IMG/VR virus record: IMGVR_UViG_3300032214_000715
Coordinates: 62,001-126,000 of that record
DNA: 64,000 nt
Direction: 5' to 3' (one strand)
The position numbers and the translations under genes are program-made. Positions 5,704-62,060 of this stretch are shown piece by piece. Position 1 is the first letter of the stretch, and the number at the start of each line of letters is the position of its first letter. Below the pieces are notes generated by a model. The model was not told the origin of the DNA, searched no databases, and saw only the letters and a list, made by a program, of their open reading frames with translations.

Positions 5704-5913
5704 TTACTCAACACGCTGACGACTGATATGTGCGTCCAAAAACGACATAGCACCTTCGCCAAACTGTTTGATACCAGCCTCGTAGGCATCGTCATAACGC
5801 TCATAGACACCGTAAACTGTGCCACGATAGACAAGAACATTGACCACGCCAGGCTGATCTTCGGGAAGACCCAGTGCCCTACGCAATTCTTCTCGTGTTC
5901 TCTTTGTCATCAT
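5704..5913 (-). CDS. Hypothetical early protein
   Basis: Own promoter and AGGAG RBS. Confidence 0.7.
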   Translation of the reverse strand: MMTKRTREELRRALGLPEDQPGVVNVLVYRGTVYGVYERYDDAYEAGIKQFGEGAMSFLDAHISRQRVE

Positions 5914-8630: not shown

Positions 8631-8815
8631 ATTTCAAATCTTGTTAATTCTACGCCACTAAGAAAATTAGTATTTACCAACTCAGATAAAGCATCAAGTT
8701 TTACTAATATCTGATCGTGGGAAATATAAACCCCGGAAATCATATATTCTTTGTTATTGTAAGTGACTAATTGTCCTGTTTTATATATTGGCAAATAAAA
8801 TACTTTAGTTGGCAT
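8627..8815 (-). CDS. Hypothetical protein
   Basis: MPTKVFY..., overlaps both neighbours. Confidence 0.55.
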   Translation of the reverse strand: MPTKVFYLPIYKTGQLVTYNNKEYMISGVYISHDQILVKLDALSELVNTNFLSGVELTRFEI

Positions 8816-9275
8816 ACCAAATCTCTTTGAAGCCTTCTTCTTCAGTGGGCATTTCAAAATTTTGAATCATAACGCTAACCACATTCCACGGAATAGTTTT
8901 TCCTGGACGATTTGACAATCGTGTCAGTAATTCGCTTTCAGCCGGTGTACGAAACACTACCGCAATCGCATAGTAGTTAGACAGCATGTTGAACTTCTTT
9001 TTTCTGCTAATGACTGACGTAGAAGTTTGATCCCAGATAATATCCTTGCCTTCATCCCGCGCCCGTACTACATCGTCTGCCATTAGTTTTACGGCATACG
9101 GCATGTAGTCTCGAAAGACTTCACTGTAGGTTTGACCCACTGTATTGGCATAGTTTTCTACATGAGCGTCTGTGCTAACAATAGCACAATTTTTAGCCCA
9201 CTCTTGATTTTTGATCCACGTAGATTTACCACTACCTGGAACACCAACTAATACATACAACTTTGGCTGACTCAT
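8805..9275 (-). CDS. P-loop kinase (AAA_33 / polynucleotide kinase-like)
   Basis: GVPGSGKST Walker A; start at MSQPK. Confidence 0.8.
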   Translation of the reverse strand: MSQPKLYVLVGVPGSGKSTWIKNQEWAKNCAIVSTDAHVENYANTVGQTYSEVFRDYMPYAVKLMADDVVRARDEGKDIIWDQTSTSVISRKKKFNMLSNYYAIAVVFRTPAESELLTRLSNRPGKTIPWNVVSVMIQNFEMPTEEEGFKEIWYAN

Positions 9276-9362
9276 TTGTTTTCCATTTAATGATTGATGT
9301 AGTATACTATAGACTGTATTTTTTGTCAAACAAATTCTATGTTATTTATTCACGTGGGAAAT

Positions 9363-9386
9363 AAAAAAGCACCCGAAGGTGCTTTT
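9363..9386 (-). terminator. Intrinsic terminator after tmRNA coding piece
   Basis: AAAAGCACC-TTCG-GGTGCTTTT plus T-run. Confidence 0.85.
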
Positions 9387-9655
9387 AGGTTTTTTCTGTT
9401 GCCCGGTATTTCCTACCGCGATAGCCGGTTTAGGCAGCCATCAGGAATGCTTCATTGTTAGCATTTAAAGGTTTTGCTTCTACAGTCGAGATATCTCAAC
9501 ATTAACGACTTCTGCTTTGCCGATTCTAATCATTTCTTATTAGCTCCGTCGAATCCTTTCATCCCCATAAAAAACATTATATTGCTTTTTATGAAAATGG
9601 TGGAGATGCCGGCATACGATAGCCGGGTCCGCAACTCATCAGATAATGACTTTCA
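9387..9655 (-). ncRNA. ssrA: Two-piece (circularly permuted) tmRNA; tag (A)ANNEAFLMAA
   Basis: Acceptor piece ending CATCTCCACCA (9598) lies upstream of GGGGATGAAAGGATTCGAC (9566); 7-bp acceptor with G3.U; tag frame 9462-9430. Confidence 0.9.
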
Positions 9656-9666
9656 AGGAAAATATC

Positions 9667-10353
9667 CTAGCGAATATTTTTATTTATCTCAATCATTCTG
9701 CCAATTTTTATTAGTTCAGTTTCATATAGCATTCTTCTTTCGTGTGATTTTTTACCTTCGTCAAGATTTACTAAACAACCACTATGAATTATAAGCCCAA
9801 AAATATCAATTAGCTTGGATTCTATCGACAATGCTTCATTTTTTGTCATGTTTTCTTTAAGAATAGATACTGAAATTTCAGAACCAGATTTTTTTATTTT
9901 TTGACGATATTTTCTATGCGAATCATTTCTATCTAAATCGTATGCTCTAGATCCTTGACCCATTCCTATATAAAATGGCTGATGCTGCATTCCAATCGTC
10001 GCCGCAAAAGTAGTGACTCCGTGTTTTCCTATAGCTATTTTTTTAGAAGGATCACAGTGAGCATAAACATAATAAGAATTATCAGTGACGTCTTCGTTAT
10101 ATAAATGAAGAATATCTGTGTTGTAAATGTTGACGCACGACTCAAATACTTCTTTTGAATGCTTATTCTTAGAATAATGACCGTGATTGGATCTCAAATT
10201 ACCTAACATATTTTTTGACCACGTCAGTAATTTTTTTAGTTCTTCTTCTGATTGCGAATCAACTTCTATATTCCATATAGAAGTATTACGTATCTGACCT
10301 TTAGTGTCAGTGACCTGTTTTCTTTTTATTTCCATACTAGTAGTATAAGACAT
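9667..10353 (-). CDS. GIY-YIG (LEM-3-like) homing endonuclease
   Basis: YYVYAHCDP...PFYIGMG...R, plus EALSIESKLI and LVN. Confidence 0.8.
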   Translation of the reverse strand: MSYTTSMEIKRKQVTDTKGQIRNTSIWNIEVDSQSEEELKKLLTWSKNMLGNLRSNHGHYSKNKHSKEVFESCVNIYNTDILHLYNEDVTDNSYYVYAHCDPSKKIAIGKHGVTTFAATIGMQHQPFYIGMGQGSRAYDLDRNDSHRKYRQKIKKSGSEISVSILKENMTKNEALSIESKLIDIFGLIIHSGCLVNLDEGKKSHERRMLYETELIKIGRMIEINKNIR

Positions 10354-10466: not shown

Positions 10467-10658
10467 TTACCAATTCTCCACGCTAGAAATTACAACTTCA
10501 AAGGTGCCTTCAATATCACCAATCTTAGTTTGAACTTTCATAGTAACAGTAGCGCCAATACCGCTGCTATTGTCACTTTCTACTTCAAAAAATTCCACAT
10601 CAGGAAATTTCTTTGACAGTTCAACCATCTTTTCTAAGTCATCACGATGTAGCAACAT
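10467..10658 (-). CDS. Hypothetical protein
   Basis: MLLHRDD..., overlaps upstream gene. Confidence 0.6.
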   Translation of the reverse strand: MLLHRDDLEKMVELSKKFPDVEFFEVESDNSSGIGATVTMKVQTKIGDIEGTFEVVISSVENW

Positions 10659-11130
10659 TTTGCTTACTCTTAACATATTCACGATATTCACGCTGCCAAT
10701 TATGTTCTTCGGGAACATCGTATGGCAATCCTAATTCACCCATCATAAGACGCATTACACGTGTATTTGGACTACGAAATCCTTCTACTAGCATAAAGCC
10801 CATATGTTCACCTACTTGTGCCACTGCGCCACTACGAGCTACTCCTGCGTAACAGTGTACTACAACATTCATATTCTTGTCAAGTGCGTGACGCAATAAA
10901 CCAACCAATTCTTTTGCTTGTGACTCACTGATAAACATTTCAGGATCATCAGCTTCATCGTTGTCATCAATATCAAGAAATTCAAAACGATAAATTTCTT
11001 TGAATTCATGCTTTGGTGTAGGGAACCAGCCTGCTGGATCCATAATTTGAATTAGCATAGAGTTTGATCCAGCTTTGTGATGGTGTCCTATAGGCACATC
11101 GGCAGCGGCTACATTTTCAATCCAGGGCAT
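10642..11130 (-). CDS. Protein tyrosine/dual-specificity phosphatase-like
   Basis: VHCYAGVARS (CX5R). Confidence 0.85.
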   Translation of the reverse strand: MPWIENVAAADVPIGHHHKAGSNSMLIQIMDPAGWFPTPKHEFKEIYRFEFLDIDDNDEADDPEMFISESQAKELVGLLRHALDKNMNVVVHCYAGVARSGAVAQVGEHMGFMLVEGFRSPNTRVMRLMMGELGLPYDVPEEHNWQREYREYVKSKQNVATS

Positions 11131-11141
11131 TATGTTTCAAA

Positions 11142-11423
11142 TTACTGAAGTCTAACTATGATGTGCCAACCAAATTGTGTTTGTACTGGGTTGCTTACTT
11201 GCCCAACAGTCATTGAAAGCACGGCGTCTTCAAACGGTTTTACCATTTGTCCTGGACCGAACATACCCAAGTTGCCTCCATTTTGTCCACTAGGACACTT
11301 TGAATGTTGTTTTGCTAATTCCACGAATGTTTCCATCGTGGAGCTTTCTGTTAGTTTCTGTAGAAGAGATTGTGCCGTGGTTTGATCTTCAACTAAGATA
11401 TGACTTGCTGCTACTTGTGACAT
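11142..11423 (-). CDS. ppiC: Parvulin-type peptidyl-prolyl isomerase
   Basis: ASHILV, SKCPSGQNGGNLG, MVKPFE and TQFGWHII motifs. Confidence 0.92.
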   Translation of the reverse strand: MSQVAASHILVEDQTTAQSLLQKLTESSTMETFVELAKQHSKCPSGQNGGNLGMFGPGQMVKPFEDAVLSMTVGQVSNPVQTQFGWHIIVRLQ

Positions 11424-12354: not shown

Positions 12355-12558
12355 ATGCCGCCGTGCGACTTCATCACTCTGTATGAAATAGGAGTTGGAT
12401 CATTAGCGGTACGACACAGTGAAATTACAACGATTGAACTTACCGCAGAATGCGCTAGTCGCATTACATTAAGCAATGGGTATAGCAAAGTAGTACAAGA
12501 AAATCCAACTAGAATATTGTTCTTAATCAACGCAGCACAAGAATTGTGTAAAGATTAA
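12355..12558 (+). CDS. Hypothetical protein
   Basis: 67-aa ORF following the previous gene. Confidence 0.5.
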   Translation: MPPCDFITLYEIGVGSLAVRHSEITTIELTAECASRITLSNGYSKVVQENPTRILFLINAAQELCKD

Positions 12559-13049
12559 GAATCCCAACTCAATCTAGATGTTTTCATTGCCGGAGCGCCC
12601 GCGTATTTCTTAACAATTTCTTCTCCAGCATCTATAAATCTAAGCGCTCGTAGTCCAACTACATTATTGGTAGTGTCAATGACTTCCTCAGCATTGGGTC
12701 TTTCGCTGTGATTGGATAATAAGAATGAGCTGATATGTATCACTCCAGTACTCTCACTGTATCTCCATCTTTTTGTCTTAGCAAACACAGCAGCATCTTC
12801 TGGTGATAATTTATATTCTATTCTACCAATTGGTATGACATGCTGATTATTGATCCAACGAAGACCCATCATTTTTACGAACCTAGTGTTCTTAATTATC
12901 TGCCAGTCTTCATCATCTATTTTTACAACTGGATCTAGAACAATTAATTCTCCATTCTGAATTGGAACAGAAGCAAATAATCCATTGCCCGCACTCTTAA
13001 TTCGTGACTTGGCCATATAACTCTTTGATGTTACTTCATTAATACGCAT
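12555..13049 (-). CDS. SET-domain protein
   Basis: GNGLFA, NHSERPN and ALRFIDAGEEI...Y motifs. Confidence 0.8.
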   Translation of the reverse strand: MRINEVTSKSYMAKSRIKSAGNGLFASVPIQNGELIVLDPVVKIDDEDWQIIKNTRFVKMMGLRWINNQHVIPIGRIEYKLSPEDAAVFAKTKRWRYSESTGVIHISSFLLSNHSERPNAEEVIDTTNNVVGLRALRFIDAGEEIVKKYAGAPAMKTSRLSWDS

Positions 13050-14752: not shown

Positions 14753-15029
14753 TGGTGGGACCAGGGGGGTTCGAACCCCCGACCAACGGATTAACCTACC
14801 ACTATAGTTTTCACTACCAGTTTCCTGTTTGTGGTCTGGACTATACCTTCATCGTATCATTTCTGACTTAGATGCCCGCCGTCTAGTCTCTACACGTTCC
14901 CATTACTGGGCTTCGCTCGGTATCGCCATTTTACAGGGTTCACCGAATTTGACGGGTTCTACTTACAAAATTTCTTTTGTAGCACTCCTATTTTAAAGTC
15001 CGCTGCTCTACCGACTGAGCTATAGTCCC
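14753..15029 (-). tRNA. tRNA-Lys(TTT), intron-containing
   Basis: Exons 15029-14996 and 14794-14753 rebuild GCGGA-CTTTTAA-TCCGT. Confidence 0.88.
14795..14995 (-). mobile_element. Group I intron (about 201 nt, no ORF) in the tRNA-Lys anticodon
   Basis: AAATTCGGTGAA, GTAGAGACTAGACGG and AAGGTATAGTCC core elements; terminal G. Confidence 0.88.
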
Positions 15030-17134: not shown

Positions 17135-17212
17135 TGGTGGTGATGGTTGGAATTGAACCAACCCCATTCTTCCTTATGAGGGAAGCGTACAGACCATCTA
17201 TACTACATCACC
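17135..17212 (-). tRNA. tRNA-Met(CAT)
   Basis: Cloverleaf with CCA. Confidence 0.88.
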
Positions 17213-17219
17213 TATTATT

Positions 17220-17296
17220 TGGTACCCACGGTTGGATTTGAACCAACGACTTTCGCCTTATCAAGACGCTACTCTGACCAACTGAGTTACGCGGGT
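17220..17296 (-). tRNA. tRNA-Ile(GAT)
   Basis: Cloverleaf with CCA. Confidence 0.9.
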
Positions 17297-17370
17297 ATAT
17301 AACCATATTTGAACACACTCAGGAGGTCAAATTCCTTTTACCAACCAGTTATGGTGAATGTGTTCAAATA

Positions 17371-17469
17371 TAGCGACCCTTTGTGGGCAGGATTCGAACC
17401 TGCAAGTGGCTTCTATTTCCACTGGCCCTATTAGAGGCCTATGTTTACCATATTCCATCACCACGGGTC
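17371..17469 (-). ncRNA. tRNA-like RNA (type II body, bulged 9-bp acceptor, abnormal anticodon loop)
   Basis: D-arm, long variable arm and perfect GCAGG-TTCGAAT-CCTGC T-arm. Confidence 0.6.
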
Positions 17470-17812
17470 ATCGGAGTCATGACTTCCGATTATGATCGAG
17501 GTTAATTACTCCTCTCTGTTAGACGCAATTTGAGTACAACTCAAGCGGCTCTTTCTAACATTTACCATAGTTCAGCACACTCAAACGGGTCTTTTCGCCA
17601 TTTCTCTTCCATGCCGTTCCACGTGAGAATGGGTAGAATGCGCTGAACTATGGTTAGTACGAGACACGATGAGCAATCCCAACTCCTCATGACCAATCGG
17701 TCACTTAGGTTAAACCTCATGCCACTTATGTACTACCATATTTGAACACACTCGCTCCCGCAATTAGACGGTTGCATTAACATCAAAAGGATGTGACGAA
17801 TGTGCTCAAATA

Positions 17813-17891
17813 TGGTACCCAGTATGGAATCGAACCGATTTCTCCAGCCGCACTTAAGAGGGTGGCGTCTTAACCAATAGACGAACTGAGT
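17813..17891 (-). ncRNA. tRNA-like RNA with distorted anticodon arm (CTCTTAA loop)
   Basis: Acceptor, D-arm, T-loop and CCA present; anticodon and T stems are bulged. Confidence 0.55.
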
Positions 17892-17981
17892 ATAACCATA
17901 TTTGAACACACTACCCAGCGTATCTAGAAAACTGTTTGTACATTAGCAATGTGCTCAAATATGGTGAAACTACGTTTTCAA

Positions 17982-18191
17982 TTACATCAACCAAATGCCG
18001 TCATAATAATATTGCCAGTGATAAGAAACACTACCAGTATCCCATTTAACCATAATTTCGTTATCATCACGGCGGCTGGCTTGTTCTATTGGAATAAGTT
18101 TATATATCATTCCCTCATTACCAGTATAAGAAGATTTTACTCTATCTCCGATTCTGAGAGACTGAAATGGAACATTCGATAGTTTTTGCAT
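17982..18191 (-). CDS. Hypothetical protein
   Basis: AGGAGG RBS. Confidence 0.7.
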   Translation of the reverse strand: MQKLSNVPFQSLRIGDRVKSSYTGNEGMIYKLIPIEQASRRDDNEIMVKWDTGSVSYHWQYYYDGIWLM

Positions 18192-18833
18192 TATGGCCTC
18201 CTATGCCATATTAAGATCCATTAAAAAATCCAAACAGTAAAATCTTTTGTGATTACTCTCCTACTATATTTGAAGATACTAGTAGACTTGCGGTCGCTTC
18301 ATCGGTGTCGTTGTGCGTCCCACTCGCATCCATTTTGTCGCTCTTTCGAGAACACCAAAACTAATACCTTCAAATATAGGCCCCACCGTTAACTGGTCAT
18401 ATCCCTAGAGTTACTTTTAGAAGGATTGTAGCACGGTGGGCACACCTGTCCTTCTCTACACTGTGTTTACTACTATTGCCTGCCCTAGGGATTAGGTACC
18501 TACCCTAGCGACTCATAGTGGATTTGTAGATAATCCGCTGCTCTTGCTAGTTTACACCATATTTTAGCAGACACGGGCCGATTCCTTATCCGTGTTTATT
18601 CTTCCCTGTGCTGGCCAGTCGGGTCGAGGCAAACTGCTAAAATATGGTGACCTGTGTTCGTATGCGGTATTGATTGACATACGGGAAAGGTCAGCGTTCC
18701 CTCTATCGGCCCTGATTTTACAGCTAGCGCGAAATTGGCGTCGGTGGTCCTAGACCTGAAGTGGTGCGGGGTCATTTCGCACGATTGCCACAAGGCTTTC
18801 GCCATCTTTCACTTACCGACATTGAATTATCAC

Positions 18834-19232
18834 TTATGATAGAAGTAATTTTTTTGATCCTTGCAGGAAATTCTGCAATTCTTTGTTTGTGCAAGCAATA
18901 GGCAAAGGAACTTTTCTCTTAACCTGCTGAACATATTTACTATCTTTGTTATTGGCATACCAATCTAGATTATCTTCCTGCATAGCAAACAAGACTGAAA
19001 TAAAACGATCTTCTTCGCCAGAATTGCTACCCACTAGTTTATATCCAACACCTAAGTTTTTTGGATGAAATTTATCCACCCATGATAAAAATTCGTTTGT
19101 TGTTATTCCTTGTGGGAAGAGATCCAAATTAGCCACACATCGCATGACATAATTTCCATACTGATCGGATTTAATCAGTTTTTTAGTTCCAACTGGAATG
19201 AGATGATCTTTTGATAAATTGAATTGTGTCAT
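18834..19232 (-). CDS. Hypothetical protein
   Basis: AAAGGT RBS before MTQF. Confidence 0.7.
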   Translation of the reverse strand: MTQFNLSKDHLIPVGTKKLIKSDQYGNYVMRCVANLDLFPQGITTNEFLSWVDKFHPKNLGVGYKLVGSNSGEEDRFISVLFAMQEDNLDWYANNKDSKYVQQVKRKVPLPIACTNKELQNFLQGSKKLLLS

Positions 19233-19257
19233 ATTGACCTTTTTAAGATAACTTGTT

Positions 19258-19332
19258 TGGTAGACCACCACGGTATCGAACCATGTTCTGTAGAGTAAGA
19301 GTCTACTGCATCACCATTAATGCTTGTGATCT
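19258..19332 (-). tRNA. tRNA-Lys(CTT)
   Basis: Cloverleaf with CCA. Confidence 0.88.
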
Positions 19333-19338
19333 ATTGAT

Positions 19339-19423
19339 TGGTGGAGTGTACTGGGATCGAACCAGTCGTGCCCGAAGGCGGCGGATTTACAGTCCACTGC
19401 ATCACCATTGATGCTTCCACTCC
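19339..19423 (-). tRNA. tRNA-Tyr(GTA)
   Basis: Type II cloverleaf with CCA. Confidence 0.93.
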
Positions 19424-19935
19424 ATTATTCTTTACCATAGTTCAACACACTACCAGTCCCGGGGACTTGAACCCCTTTGCTCTAGATAGTTTCCTGACAT
19501 TTCGGTCTGGCAAGTAATATGCTGAACTATGGTGCCAATCATTTACATTGGCTTAGGGAATTTCGGTCCTCACGGGTGCTCCGCTACATACCACCCATCT
19601 ACCATACAAATTATCCGGTCTTTGTATGTAGACTTTTTACTCTCATTTACCATATTGAAACACACTACCGCAAACTTTCAATGCACGATGCAGTCTATGG
19701 CATCCGTAATGTGCTTCAATATGGCGGCAAGTTTCGTGATAGTTTGATGACGTTGTAGAGGTTCACTATGGCGTGAACTTACAGAGCGCAATAACTTCTC
19801 CCTATCAAAAACCCACTTGCCTATTACCATAGTTCAACACACTGATGAGAATCACACTCCCCTATTTCTCACAATAGGTTACGCCTAGGAGTCACACACA
19901 GATTCGGCTGTGCTGCGATACAATACGCTGAACTA

Positions 19936-20010
19936 TGGTACCCCTGAACGGTTACGATCCGTCTTCTCAGCCTTGAAAGGGCCGTGTTCTAGCCACTAAA
20001 CTACAGGGGC
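19936..20010 (-). tRNA. tRNA-Glu(TTC)
   Basis: Cloverleaf; CCA overlaps the start of a conserved hairpin. Confidence 0.9.
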
Positions 20011-20026
20011 AAATACTCTATGCTGA

Positions 20027-20057
20027 TTCTTAAAGAACTGTTGCTGAACTCTCAGCG
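20027..20057 (-). promoter_or_regulatory. boxB-like hairpin plus boxA-like antitermination motif
   Basis: GCTGA-GAGT-TCAGC then GTTCTTTAAGAA; also at 21727-21756 and 22060-22087, boxA alone at 22874-22885. Confidence 0.65.
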
Positions 20058-20118
20058 TATGAACATATTATATGCTAACGCTGATTTATTGTCAACAGTC
20101 TTTTGTCAATTTGTTGTT

Positions 20119-20439
20119 TGGTGCCCGGAGCCGGAATCGAACCGGCACGGCCGAAGCCGAGGGATTTTAAGCGTGTTGTCTCAAAGTTTCCAATGAGCAC
20201 GGACTATCTCTTTACCTTCAACATTACTTGTTAAGGCAGTGGGCGTTCTATGCTGGTTATTAAGAGGGCTTTACCTCTCCAGTAGTCTCTACACCTTCAC
20301 TGAATGTATTCAGTGCTTGGCTCGCGATTGCCATTTTACAGGCTCTCCCGAATTAACCCACAGTTTACTCACACATTTCTGTGTGAGGGGGACGGGCTTT
20401 CTGGTCCTCCCTTGTGTCTACCTATTTCACCATCCGGGC
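20119..20439 (-). tRNA. tRNA-Leu(TAA), intron-containing
   Basis: Exons 20439-20408 and 20171-20119 rebuild AGGGA-CTTAAAA-TCCCT. Confidence 0.88.
20172..20407 (-). mobile_element. Group I intron (about 236 nt) at tRNA position 31/32
   Basis: TTAATTCGGGAGA, GTAGAGACTA and AAGAGATAGTCC core elements; terminal G. Confidence 0.85.
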
Positions 20440-20520
20440 GTTTTGTTAACTTTCCATTAATTATGTTTGTAATTTTATAGACAATATAATACATTTTAAT
20501 AACATGGTTAATGAAGTTTG

Positions 20521-20594
20521 CTGGCCTGATTGGGATCGAACCAATGACCTAACGATTAACAGTCGTTTGCTACTACCGTCTGAGCTACAGGCCA
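20521..20594 (-). tRNA. tRNA-Asn(GTT), no encoded CCA
   Basis: Cloverleaf. Confidence 0.9.
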
Positions 20595-20611
20595 GCAAAC
20601 TTCACTAATTT

Positions 20612-20689
20612 TGGTGGGAGCGGTCGGACTCGAACCGACATCTGCGCGATTATGAGTCGCGAGTCATTAACCAATTAGACGACACTCCC
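20612..20689 (-). tRNA. tRNA(CAT), probably Ile2 (lysidine type)
   Basis: Cloverleaf with CCA; third CAT tRNA, identity inferred. Confidence 0.85.
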
Positions 20690-20735
20690 AATCTTTTATC
20701 TAACAAACAAAGTATAACTGTATTATTTACAGTTG

Positions 20736-21521
20736 TCAACTAGTTCTTAGAATTTTTTCTAGTTCATCAACAATCTTATTCAGATCATTTTCTACATTAT
20801 CGCTCCAAATGTATCTTATTTTAAATCCACACATTTGAGCAAGTTGTTCTTTCTTTCTATCCTTCTGCCAGATTTCTTCTCTAGTTCCCATAGATTTATA
20901 TGGTACCTTGAATTCTTCTGTTAAAGTCTTAGGATGATACGCTATTCCTTGATATTCAACAATGTATTTTATATCTAGAAACACCAAATCATAAAAAAAT
21001 ATTTGAGAATCATCCCTTAAAAAGTATTCTCTTCCATTTTTATGAAAGAAAACATTAGTGACTTTTGGAATCTGTTCTAGAAGACGCTCAATTACAACTT
21101 GACTTTCAACCGAGGCATATGAAGTCCTCGGATTTCTCAGATTTCCCTCGCGTATCAATTGTCGAGTGTGCGCGGAAACTTCTGGTTTGTCTAAGCCCAA
21201 TTCTGCTGCCTTTGAGAACTTATTACGCCCGATCCCTAATCCTTTTTTACCCTTCATTCCATAAGAAGGGTTCTTAGTCTTTTTTTCGGGATTTTTCTTA
21301 CATAATGATTCGTGCTGAGAAATGCTATTTGAATTTTTTCCTACGAAATCACAAAACTTACATTTGTATTCAGCAAGCTTAAACTGGTCTGCTTTTTCTC
21401 TAACTAGAGAAGAGAACAATTTTCCAGTTTTACATTGCTTGGATCCATAATGGATCTTTAGATTATTAGACGTTATCTCATTTTTACATGAGATACAAGA
21501 ACATAAATATTTTGCTACCAT
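20736..21521 (-). CDS. Vsr/EDxHD-like putative homing endonuclease with Zn fingers
   Basis: YDLVF...VEYQGIAYH...KDRKK...GFKIRYIW. Confidence 0.7.
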   Translation of the reverse strand: MVAKYLCSCISCKNEITSNNLKIHYGSKQCKTGKLFSSLVREKADQFKLAEYKCKFCDFVGKNSNSISQHESLCKKNPEKKTKNPSYGMKGKKGLGIGRNKFSKAAELGLDKPEVSAHTRQLIREGNLRNPRTSYASVESQVVIERLLEQIPKVTNVFFHKNGREYFLRDDSQIFFYDLVFLDIKYIVEYQGIAYHPKTLTEEFKVPYKSMGTREEIWQKDRKKEQLAQMCGFKIRYIWSDNVENDLNKIVDELEKILRTS

Positions 21522-22137
21522 ACATCTATTTATGCTTTGACCTATTGTTCTATGTTTTTACTATATTTGAACACACTGCCAGTCCCGGGGACTTGAACCC
21601 CTTTGCTCTTGATAGTTTCCCGACATTTCGGTCCGGCAAGCAATGCGCTCAAATATAGTATCACGCTACGTCAACAGTGCTAGTATTTAGCACCTCAGTT
21701 GGCGTGATACAAAAACTCTATGCTAATTTTTAAAGATCATCGCTGATTTCTCAGCGTTGAAGACAGTATATCAGAGTTCTGATTTATTGTCAAGAAACTG
21801 CCAGGTAGCTTAATGTGTGATTTCCACTACCCTGTTACTCTGTATCAGTCTAGATTGCTCTAGCATCAACCTGCGTCACACTGTGTGCAGACAGTATCAT
21901 AACTATATCAGGACTCCCATTTATTGTCAACAACTCTCAATGATTAGATCGAAATGCACTCGCATCTGCTTTTTGAGCCGCGTGTTCTACACCCTTGATT
22001 CCTAGACTAGTACTAGAGGCGTGTGCCCATTTACACTAGCACTTCGATCTAATCACTGATTGTTAAAGAACTTGTTGATTTCTCAACTGTTAGAGACAGT
22101 ATATCAGGGTTCTGATTTATTGTCAAATTTTTGGTTA

Positions 22138-22470
22138 TCACTCCGTAGGCACAATACCAACTGCGCCACCGTGCGCCTCAATGTATGCCTCTACCAGTTC
22201 AACTGGAACATATGCAAACACGGTTTGGCTATCATCAATCGAGTCGCCACCCTCTTTGTACTCGGCCGCCTCAGGCCAAGGTGCAGACGGAAAGCCAACC
22301 TCTACAGCAGTGTAGGGACCCTCACTATCGCGTGGAGTGCAATAATGCCCCGCACTCGCCTGTACCGACAGTGTAGTACCGTCAGTGCACACAATGCCTG
22401 GGCGAACTCTTACCATGAGTCCTTCATGCGCTTCATGCGTAACCGTAGGCAGTACCAATTTGTAGCTCAT
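22138..22470 (-). CDS. Hypothetical early protein
   Basis: Own promoter 22500-22528 and RBS. Confidence 0.75.
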   Translation of the reverse strand: MSYKLVLPTVTHEAHEGLMVRVRPGIVCTDGTTLSVQASAGHYCTPRDSEGPYTAVEVGFPSAPWPEAAEYKEGGDSIDDSQTVFAYVPVELVEAYIEAHGGAVGIVPTE

Positions 22471-22710
22471 TTCTTGTTCCTTTTTTCTAACTTGAATACA
22501 GTATATCAGTTACCTGATTTATTGTCAACTGTTATCTGTAGTGTGCTTATCAGCCCATCCTGTTAATTCAAGCTATACACCCTTACCAGATGTTCACACC
22601 GTTACATGCGGGGGTTATTTCCCCTATCGTATGCCCCCGTAACGAGAGGCATATGGGCTGATAAACACACTATAGATATCTGTAATGCGTTTTAGGCTGA
22701 AGACTTCATA

Positions 22711-22780
22711 AACTCTAGAGGGATTCGAACCCTCGTCACCGACCGATGGGCCAGTGTCTTATCCGCTAGACGATAGAGAC
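22711..22780 (-). pseudogene. tRNA-like element with short anticodon loop and no CCA
   Basis: D-arm and GAGGG-TTCGAAT-CCCTC T-arm, inside long hairpin 22678-22874. Confidence 0.6.
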
Positions 22781-23108
22781 TCCCTCCTTTTTCGCTCGGC
22801 AAAGCTACTCTGATCGGGGTGAAGTAACAGACCTTCTGACGATTGCCGCCATCAGCCTAAAACACACTACAGATTGTTAAAGAACTGGACAGTTTACGCT
22901 ACTGTCAAACGAAGACCTGTAGGCTATCAGGCTGCCACGCTGATGTTAACACCGATCAACGGGATTGTGCTTCCCGAAACTTCTAGACAGTGACGGTGGG
23001 AGTTTGTTGTCCCGCTTATGTCAACAGTCTCAGAGACCCTGTTTTTTGATCAGTTCTTCAGCGTATGAATACATTATAGTTGAAGACACATTTATTGTCA
23101 AATTTTGG

Positions 23109-61622: not shown

Positions 61623-62060
61623 TTAGTTAGCTACAATACGATTTACTCTTACGTAAGTAGCATCAAAAATATCGGTCTTAACCACGCCGTAATCGTTCGC
61701 TTCATGACGAACGATATAATCGTTAGCGGTGGTGTAGTAGAGATTCTGTGGACCACTGCCCCAGTTAACTACTACATGCCCGTCGTGATCGGCTAGTTTA
61801 GCTAGCTTGACGATCTTTACTGGACGACATTCTCCATTACCCAAGTCTTCTTTTGTATTCTTAAAAGTTTCTGGGCTCACGATCCAACGTTCGTTCTTAA
61901 CTCCAGTAAGAATATAATCACCTACACCATACGGCACTGGATTTGGATTTTCAAGCGATACTAATGTTCCAGCTTCAGTTGCGATTTCATATCGCTCAAC
62001 ACGATCTTGCCTTTTATAACACTCAAAAGAATTTGAGTCAAACCACGATTCATCAATCAT
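61623..62060 (-). CDS. Hypothetical protein (PGDYG-like)
   Basis: SLE...GDYILTG...ERW...F; two-repeat layout. Confidence 0.7.
   Translation of the reverse strand: MIDESWFDSNSFECYKRQDRVERYEIATEAGTLVSLENPNPVPYGVGDYILTGVKNERWIVSPETFKNTKEDLGNGECRPVKIVKLAKLADHDGHVVVNWGSGPQNLYYTTANDYIVRHEANDYGVVKTDIFDATYVRVNRIVAN

Follow-up and report, generated by a model that had tools for sequence, protein, structure and literature searches.

The stretch of DNA analysed here, 64,000 nucleotides long and called the window below, covers positions 62,001 to 126,000 of IMG/VR virus record IMGVR_UViG_3300032214_000715, which has 239,163 bp, 39.8% G+C and an estimated completeness of 68%. The proteins of the record include a tail sheath, a tail tube and a ribonucleotide reductase and its source is a tailed jumbo phage from freshwater. 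On the minus strand, the part of the window from about 9.4 to 25.6 kb has all 26 of the transfer RNAs (tRNAs) predicted by ARAGORN, along with a permuted transfer-messenger RNA (tmRNA) and two group I introns. A preliminary description made from the letters alone had drawn attention to RNAs within this array that are not tRNAs and that end in an acceptor-like stem plus CCA directly 5' of conserved hairpins, and had taken them for tRNA-end mimics that could be charged or act as decoys. As the array tRNAs and six promoters lie on the minus strand the structures are to be read on that strand, and read in this way the coordinates given for them are right. To judge from the consensus sigma-70 sequences of the promoters the array is probably transcribed on the minus strand by the host RNA polymerase.

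Ten conserved hairpins of 69-116 nt each lie at 17303-21658 on the minus strand, confined to 4.4 kb with none elsewhere in the 239 kb genome, and the motif of their arms has 14 matches in the window against 0.32 expected. Each consists of a conserved stem, which we call the frame, around a variable insert.

17303-17373, minus strand: frame hairpin 1, starting with CUA, between the pseudo-tRNA at 17371-17467 and a tRNA-Ile
17565-17653, minus strand: frame hairpin 2, with an insert from an 89-nt family whose inner helices covary
17736-17815, minus strand: frame hairpin 3, its CCA common with the tRNA-like gene at 17816-17891
17896-17964, minus strand: frame hairpin 4, directly after the open reading frame (ORF) at 17982-18191
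18264-18379, minus strand: frame hairpin 5, a CUA...UAG variant in which both sides are changed
18557-18648, minus strand: frame hairpin 6, with the variant stem CCAUAUUUUAGCAG/CUGCUAAAAUAUGG
19435-19532, minus strand: frame hairpin 7, whose insert has a T-arm equal to that of the phage tRNA-Asp over 16 nt
19650-19724, minus strand: frame hairpin 8
19827-19938, minus strand: frame hairpin 9, its nucleotides 1-3 being the CCA of tRNA-Glu(UUC) at 19936-20010
21561-21658, minus strand: frame hairpin 10, CUA...UAG, with an insert 95% identical to that of hairpin 7

The frame is a stem of 17 bp with the conserved sequence CCAUA...CAUU / AGUG...UAUGG, and each hairpin of the window starts with C(C/U)A, this CCA or CUA pairing with the UGG at the 3' end of the hairpin. 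A scan of viral contigs with the motif of the 3' arm gave loci L001-L038, 24 of which carry the same hairpin; together with the window this makes 93 copies, of which 72 are distinct. As L016 and the window are 100% identical, L016 did not count as an independent locus. In every one of the 25 loci that carry them the hairpins lie inside tRNA arrays. Comparison of 70 distinct stems shows pairs 1, 3, 4 and 5 (C-G, A-U, U-A, A-U) to be constant in all, pairs 1-5 being fixed by the search pattern, and pair 10 (A-U) in 69, while pair 16 is U.G in 56 and pair 17 is U-A in 62 and unpaired in 7. At pairs 6-9 and 11-15 the sequence changes and pairing is retained, and positions 1-16 of the stems are 96-100% paired and free of bulges. 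In each of the 25 loci the arms pair best on the strand of the tRNAs, where the wobble positions are G.U; on the opposite strand they would read as A.C mismatches, and the hairpin is therefore an RNA structure formed from the tRNA strand. When neither CCA nor UGG was demanded at the ends, a search found stems of 18 bp in 28 of 68 cases and of 19 bp in 19, the base before CCA usually pairing with a U after UGG and so extending the frame. Nine of the 70 distinct frames open with CUA and in four of them the partner has switched to A. In bacterial genomes the frame pattern occurs in five places only, on four contigs (1.5-44 kb) from four metagenome-assembled genomes (MAGs), which are probably mis-binned phage DNA, so that the frame is not a host feature. 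In L037, at approximately 5800-5890 of the oriented contig, a member of the L017_2917 family has just the 3' end of a frame (…GGACA|ACUAUGG); here the arms appear to have recombined with each other, removing both the insert and the CCA.

The start of the frame coincides with the end of genuine tRNAs. Across the loci 22 ARAGORN tRNAs end in a CCA that is nucleotides 1-3 of a frame, with an offset of 0, and they comprise Glu-UUC, Lys-UUU, Gln-UUG, Thr-UGU, Leu-UAA and Leu-UAG; the example in the window is tRNA-Glu at 19936-20010 on the minus strand, with its CCA joined to hairpin 9. CCA is also encoded in 240 of 263 array tRNAs that have no frame, so that it is a gene-encoded part of the tRNA onto which the hairpin is built. 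The sequence 3' of the CCA is A/U-rich whether a frame is present or absent. The preliminary description named as its own refutation a CCA that is only part of the downstream hairpin; the CCA is indeed part of that hairpin, but it is equally the gene-encoded end of the upstream unit. As a separate observation, every tRNA directly followed by a frame has U34 (six identities), which may be due to chance. Transfer RNAs with 2-thio-U34 are targets of several anticodon nucleases, and three of the six identities that donate their CCA belong to this group.

Two further tRNA-like genes precede frames in the window.

17816-17891, minus strand: tRNA-like gene (Rfam tRNA, 29 bits), counted here as a tRNA
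17371-17467, minus strand: pseudo-tRNA (tRNA-??? in ARAGORN; 23.9 bits in Rfam, under the cut-off)

The pseudo-tRNA has a T-arm, a long extra arm and a 3' end of G then CUA, and its closing helix is interrupted, with 5+3/4 bp (GACCC/GGGUC + GUG(G)/(C)CAC). Its relatives in L006, L017, L031 and L037 each have a different 'anticodon' loop and always end in CUA, never in CCA.

The other units upstream of the hairpins are not tRNAs. The six that follow, two of them entered with their 3' part as well, received no ARAGORN call and no Rfam match up to E 1.

19722-19821, minus strand: U8, a rod-shaped RNA of 100 nt with a 7-bp closing helix (GGCAAGU/ACUUGCC), G and CCA; fold z -2.3
17651-17735, minus strand: U2, 85 nt, with a 6-bp closing helix (UAGUAC/GUACUA), A and CCA; fold z -2.0
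18645-18693, minus strand: U6, 49 nt, with the closing helix UGACCU/AGGUCA round an inner hairpin, then CCA; fold z -4.2
19530-19649, minus strand: U7, 120 nt in three hairpins; whole-unit fold z -2.3
19530-19552, minus strand: last hairpin of U7, the microhelix GCCAAU/AUUGGC-A-CCA; fold z -2.4
18377-18556, minus strand: U5, about 180 nt
18377-18441, minus strand: 3' part of U5, with an 8-bp helix (CCCACCGU/ACGGUGGG), GC and CUA; fold z -1.7
21657-21710, minus strand: U10, 54 nt, with the closing helix AUCACGC/GCGUGAU, A and CUA; fold z -5.8

Six of the seven structures singled out in the preliminary description therefore fold as it claimed (z -1.7 to -5.8), and they do lie directly 5' of the hairpins, in that their CCA or CUA is nucleotides 1-3 of the next one. 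The seventh, a microhelix at 17962-17980, had to be dropped: its predicted energy is -1.2 kcal/mol with z -0.6 and it is the 3' untranslated region after the stop of the 69-codon ORF at 17982-18191.

Several units have relatives with which their helices and ends can be compared. The sole relative of U8, at L028:13172-13280, differs on both sides of 9 of the 32 predicted pairs with none broken; its closing helix is GACUAGA/UCUAGUC, with 3 double changes in 7 pairs, and it retains G-CCA and the subsequent hairpin, the whole fold being an elongated rod without a cloverleaf. A search with the U8 core found L028 alone in viral contigs and 12 chance matches in metagenome contigs. The core of U2 is 85-90% conserved in L009 and L018, where the relatives end in GCUA-CCA and GCGA-CCA with no conserved hairpin afterwards, and a search with it returned 15 chance matches and three real ones known before. 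R-CCA (R standing for a purine) is retained without the hairpin in three further families, and its retention in such frameless relatives means that the CCA is not merely hairpin sequence. U10, the first RNA after the promoter at 21793, belongs to a family in which, in an alignment of six sequences, 5 of 20 pairs are changed on both sides; two members end in A-CUA and four in A-CCA, the latter in L017, L031, L032 and L035 with the helix AUUACGU/ACGUGAU-A-CCA. U5 has relatives in L006, L017 and L031, with 79% identity across about 170 nt, and its end is GC-CUA in the window versus GU-CCA in L017 and L031. Outside the window U6 was found only in the 100%-identical L016, and contig comparison found no relative of U7.

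We then considered all non-tRNA (ARAGORN-negative) upstream contexts of the 25 loci, 53 of them distinct and falling into 34 families, with one representative per family for the helix statistics (n=34) and positions 8-70 nt further upstream as controls. Among helices with a 3' strand that stops exactly 1 nt short of the CCA, the longest has a mean length of 6.26 bp over the 34 families compared with 4.98 at the control positions, and none of 2000 resamplings attained the observed mean. A helix of at least 7 bp is present in 44% of families against 15% at control positions. The unpaired base before CCA is A in 22 families, G in 10, C in 1 and U in 1, that is a purine in 32 of 34, and the closing helices, which range from 5 to 10 bp, open with G in 18 of 31. 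The units themselves measure 17-127 nt, from bare microhelices (for example GGGGG...CCCCC-A-CCA) to RNAs of about 100 nt, and ends made of a G-start microhelix, A and CCA are common among the other families as well. The view that these are tRNA-end mimics of the minihelix type is thus supported by comparative sequence evidence: an end-closing helix, one unpaired base and CCA recur in 34 families, with covariation in U8 and U10, R-CCA in frameless relatives and the same junction at true tRNAs.

What the frames enclose follows a different pattern. The interior measures 31-122 nt, and 51 unrelated insert families are represented among the 72 distinct hairpins. An insert can be near-identical between contigs whose tRNA-like units diverge by about 15%, and one insert was found behind four different upstream units, before different downstream units and in different stem variants. 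Behind tRNA-Glu, which has a hairpin at six loci from five phages, five different inserts occur, and contigs from other samples join the arms of different window hairpins, for example 17798 to 19708 and 17964 to 19433. Such comparisons are taken to show modular exchange of inserts between phages, and homologous recombination between the 17-nt arms would be enough to account for the shuffling. Covarying helices are present in some inserts, for example in the 89-nt family to which hairpin 2 belongs, and the inserts of hairpins 7 and 10 contain the T-arm that matches tRNA-Asp over 16 nt; as a class the inserts are as stable as shuffled sequence (mean z -0.2 over the 51 families). No antisense or decoy target of inserts or units gave a significant match elsewhere in the phage genome except this T-arm of tRNA-Asp, and among 151 genomes from the family of G001, a MAG titled Polynucleobacter, the only matches were to tRNA-Tyr and one phage-like contig.

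The remaining features of the array and its surroundings are as follows.

20067-20095, minus strand: sigma-70 promoter with a 12/12 consensus match, 5' of tRNA-Glu
22528, 22126, 21930, 21793 and 20739, minus strand: sigma-70 promoters with 11/12 consensus matches
9385-9708, minus strand: permuted (two-piece) tmRNA gene, 82.7 bits, at the edge of the tRNA array
8805-9329 and 10642-11130, minus strand: a P-loop kinase (AAA_33/Zeta-toxin-like, E 9e-16) and a dual-specificity-phosphatase-like protein, flanking the tmRNA
11142-11423, minus strand: parvulin-type peptidyl-prolyl isomerase (E 6e-22), inside the tRNA array
12555-13049, minus strand: SET-domain protein (E 3e-10), inside the tRNA array
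14814-15005, minus strand: group I intron, 69 bits
20120-20445, minus strand: group I intron, 56 bits, interrupting a tRNA-Leu(UAA)-like gene
19342-19423, minus strand: tRNA-Tyr(GUA) with a long extra arm, 34 bits in Rfam, missed by ARAGORN
21932-22064, minus strand: 26-bp stem with an interior of 81 nt, directly after the promoter at 22126
22528-22683, minus strand: long stem of a second kind, with arms of 23-31 nt (AUCUGUAGUGUGUUU... / ...ACGCAUUACAGAU) and a 94-nt interior
22678-22874, minus strand: the second kind again, with the same arms and a 151-nt interior that includes the tRNA-like gene at 22709-22781

The promoter modules themselves occur as repeats, those at 22126, 21793 and 20095 having similar short stem-loops (for example CGCUGAGAAAUCAGCG) at the transcript starts, as at 21741-21756 of the window. 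The arms of the second kind of stem contain, in reversed orientation, the main frame's AGUGUGUU / GCACAUU duplex. The tRNA-Tyr shares 85% identity with a tRNA-Tyr annotated in Limnohabitans phage DC31, a phage without frames, and among GenBank phages the region had no relative, with matches to tRNAs alone. At the site of the intron at 20120-20445 contigs from other samples have an intron-less tRNA-Leu with anticodon-arm letters of its own (joints 20147-20153 to 20408-20415). Permuted tmRNA genes also edge the tRNA arrays of L008 (101-374, 110 bits) and L012 (770-1060, 97 bits). The kinase and the phosphatase-like gene are both kept in L014 and L009, and L002 has the latter as well; the two might together heal RNA ends, and a PF09414 search of the phage genome found no RNA ligase partner for them. 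ORFs within the array gave no more than weak hints of homing endonucleases or zinc fingers, and none of these ORFs is kept across the frame-bearing contigs. In the window Rfam found nothing beyond tRNAs, tmRNA and group I introns, either at the gathering cut-off or at E up to 1.

Taken as a whole the region is best explained, in our view and with moderate confidence, as a polycistronic small-RNA array, a chain of modules that each fold independently and have their 5' and 3' ends paired, and that are of two kinds. The first would comprise tRNAs, pseudo-tRNAs and unrelated small RNAs that have in common an acceptor-like helix, usually with a G at its start, one purine and an encoded CCA. The second would be the frame hairpin placed on the CCA of the first, where the purine would usually pair as well and the stem could stack directly on the acceptor-like helix. 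From the observed strand, structures, covariation, common CCA and exchange of inserts we infer the following about cutting enzymes, RNA ends and the role of the cargo.

We propose that the tRNA-end mimics are handles for processing and stability in a polycistronic array in which they alternate with stem-framed, swappable cassettes, a view we hold with about as much conviction as doubt. Bacterial RNase P reads the helix, G+1 and the 3' RCCA of its substrates, and tRNA ends are trimmed exonucleolytically to CCA, which can be repaired. The design has G+1, the helix and RCCA and so carries features that tRNA-processing enzymes read. RNase P might accordingly cut 5' of the closing helix while an endonuclease would cut at the boundary between CCA and frame, candidates being an RNase E-like enzyme at CCA|UAUUU, an RNase Z-like enzyme after the purine, and RNase III, which could cut inside a stacked helix of about 25 bp (the stem of 17-19 bp plus the 7-bp helix). 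Exonucleases and the CCA-adding enzyme would trim and repair the product to a tRNA-like end, and the non-tRNA RNAs would thereby be excised and kept stable by the tRNA machinery of the host. The CCA|UAUUU boundary and the A/U-rich flanks of frameless tRNAs would agree with an RNase E-type cut and subsequent trimming, and an RNase Z-type cut after the purine or an RNase III cut in the stacked helix is equally possible. A Pfam search of the phage genome (68% complete) found no RNase III (PF14622), CCA-adding enzyme (PF01743), RtcB or RNA ligase (PF09414), so that processing would fall to the host.

Several points weigh against this proposal. No public RNA run contained the stretch itself, and the reads of four runs gave short fragments of relatives, mostly DNA-like, and no RNA 5' or 3' ends. 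In the precursor R-CCA is base-paired, the CCA with UGG and R with U, so that for RNase P to recognise a free RCCA the stem would first have to be cleaved or to breathe. Pairing with the frame U, instead of tRNA mimicry, could account for the purine preference, and the CUA frames show that at position 2 of the CCA it is the frame pairing that is conserved rather than the identity of the CCA. In four U10 relatives the helix can extend over the A and CC by way of a 5' GG, and many units are mere microhelices. Finally, a pure handle view leaves unexplained the near-identical inserts beside units that have diverged by about 15%.

In a more far-reaching reading the frame would be a cassette platform, attached to the 3' end of a tRNA or of a mimic, that shows one of dozens of interchangeable RNAs of 31-122 nt, and the mimics and cargo RNAs would form a diversifying arsenal against host defences directed at tRNA or other RNA instead of being processing signals alone. 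Phages would swap the inserts by recombination of the arms and the tRNA-processing machinery of the host would release them. We regard this extension as unlikely as things stand.

The CCA-ended helices, and perhaps the inserts, might also serve anti-defence as decoys, as the preliminary description had suggested, absorbing host factors that attack or sense tRNA ends or parts and shielding the phage tRNAs. An array with at least 26 tRNAs and a permuted tmRNA suggests a setting of conflict over tRNAs, the neighbouring kinase and phosphatase-like protein are possible end-healing enzymes, the replacement of inserts in slots that stay is typical for fast-evolving conflict loci, and many units are minimal, made of a G-start helix, A and CCA. 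On the other hand no toxin, sensor or target was identified, CUA variants turn up in families that have CCA relatives, and decoy and processing handle look the same at the sequence level; we rate decoys as improbable.

A third possibility, on which we place similarly little weight, is that the frames are plain punctuation hairpins for RNase III or another enzyme, in the style of T7 early transcripts, with upstream helices that are ordinary and mimic no tRNA. The frames flank an mRNA too, with the ORF at 17982-18191 lying between hairpins 5 and 4, their stem length is constant at 17-19 bp, and the inserts are on average no stabler than shuffled sequence. This would leave unexplained, however, why the frame starts on the CCA and takes it from real tRNAs, why R-CCA persists where there is no frame, and why exactly one base separates the helix from the CCA.

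Even less probable in our judgement is a DNA-level origin, in which the hairpins are recombination sites or miniature mobile elements aimed at the 3' ends of tRNA genes, the CCA is simply the sequence they target or end with, and the upstream helices are incidental. The passage of one insert behind four different upstream units with differing downstream flanks, the joining of arms of different hairpins in contigs from other samples, the gene-hairpin-gene-hairpin layout reminiscent of integron cassettes and the palindromic CCAUAUGG all fit such an origin. Against it, the genome (68% complete) has no match to a tyrosine recombinase (PF00589), Y1 transposase or reverse transcriptase (PF00078), ordinary homologous recombination between 17-nt arms suffices for the shuffling, the wobbles on the tRNA strand are G.U at every locus (25 of 25), R-CCA is kept without the hairpin, and the enrichment of the upstream helix goes unexplained. 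Of known elements we rejected the integron attC, given the missing PF00589 match and perfect stems that lack both attC-type extrahelical bases and a central spacer, the miniature inverted-repeat transposable element (MITE) or Correia-like repeat, given 51 unrelated insert families among 72 distinct hairpins, and the retron RNA, given the missing PF00078 match.

Charging by a synthetase, in the manner of tmRNA or the tRNA-like structures of plant viruses, which the preliminary description had also considered, is very unlikely: a helix, a purine and CCA do make up a minimal aminoacylatable minihelix and the array does contain a tmRNA, but G3.U70, the identity element for minihelix charging by alanyl-tRNA synthetase, is absent from all 31 closing helices (3:70 pairs CG 13, UG 10, GC 5, UA 2, AU 1), there is no anticodon arm, C73 occurs in 1 of 34 families with no extra G-1 design for histidyl-tRNA synthetase, helix length varies from 5 to 10 bp, and CCA alternates with CUA among relatives.

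The reading as processing handles can be set beside several known systems. The hairpins that RNase III cuts in T7 early transcripts and the stalks of rRNA are, like the frames, conserved stems in a polycistronic transcript that host polymerase makes from strong promoters, and an RNA is freed from within the 16S and 23S stalks much as might happen with the frames; these stems have no fusion to a tRNA CCA, though, and no library of swappable inserts. YrlA, a bacterial Y RNA, has a long terminal stem and a T-arm, and hairpins 7 and 10 likewise enclose a T-arm. The YrlA of Mycobacterium smegmatis is an RNase P substrate to which CCA is added (PMC4201824). We rejected a Y RNA on several grounds: the 239 kb genome has no match to Ro60 (TROVE), with positive controls, 17200-22200 has no Rfam match up to E 1, and YrlA has a bulged Ro-binding site whereas the frame stem is a perfect helix and most inserts are without a T-arm. 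The t-elements of plant mitochondria and MALAT1 mascRNA are non-decoding tRNA-like structures that act as processing signals, as is proposed here, through which RNase P and RNase Z set the ends of neighbouring RNAs (for t-elements, PMC1920247). They are organellar or eukaryotic and flank mRNAs or long RNAs, in contrast to a phage array with encoded CCA, many microhelices and predicted processing.

The closest parallel is in phage T4, where rnaC (species 1) and rnaD (species 2) are non-tRNA small RNAs among tRNA genes on the same strand, as here. Both are RNase P substrates; rnaC has a T-arm adjoining the closing helix and rnaD ends in ...GCGCACC with a genomic A next, and the T4 array has a homing-endonuclease gene inside it, for which this phage has weak matches. 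T4 has two such RNAs and no conserved frame, compared with many families here, each fused through its CCA to a 17-bp frame, and there is no sequence similarity between them. The function of rnaC and rnaD is still called unknown (PMC9697503), and by analogy the handle mode may apply to them too. Non-tRNA RNAs with tRNA-like ends inside a tRNA cluster are therefore of a kind already known from T4, t-elements, mascRNA and YrlA, while a CCA-fused conserved 17-bp frame with exchangeable inserts has no description in Rfam or in the literature we searched. Phage tRNA arrays are usually annotated as tRNAs and 'spacers'; in this one the spacers are dense conserved small RNAs of two repeated designs. 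A borrowed tRNA 3' end would be a simple and testable rule by which host enzymes excise and stabilise arbitrary phage RNAs. Frames occur in at least 25 lake-phage contigs near GOLLD and tmRNA genes and could lead to the function of the RNAs of tRNA islands, and they may find use as a natural scaffold for the expression of multiple RNAs. GOLLD is likewise a structured RNA in the tRNA arrays of lake phages, larger at about 400-800 nt than the units here, which have 23-180 nt and belong to many families, and with a conserved fold of its own; Rfam finds none in the window, but L017 carries, in an array that also contains eight frames, a GOLLD RNA at 2411-2870 (225 bits) with a tRNA embedded in it, and this places the elements described here among the unexplained RNAs of lake-phage tRNA islands.

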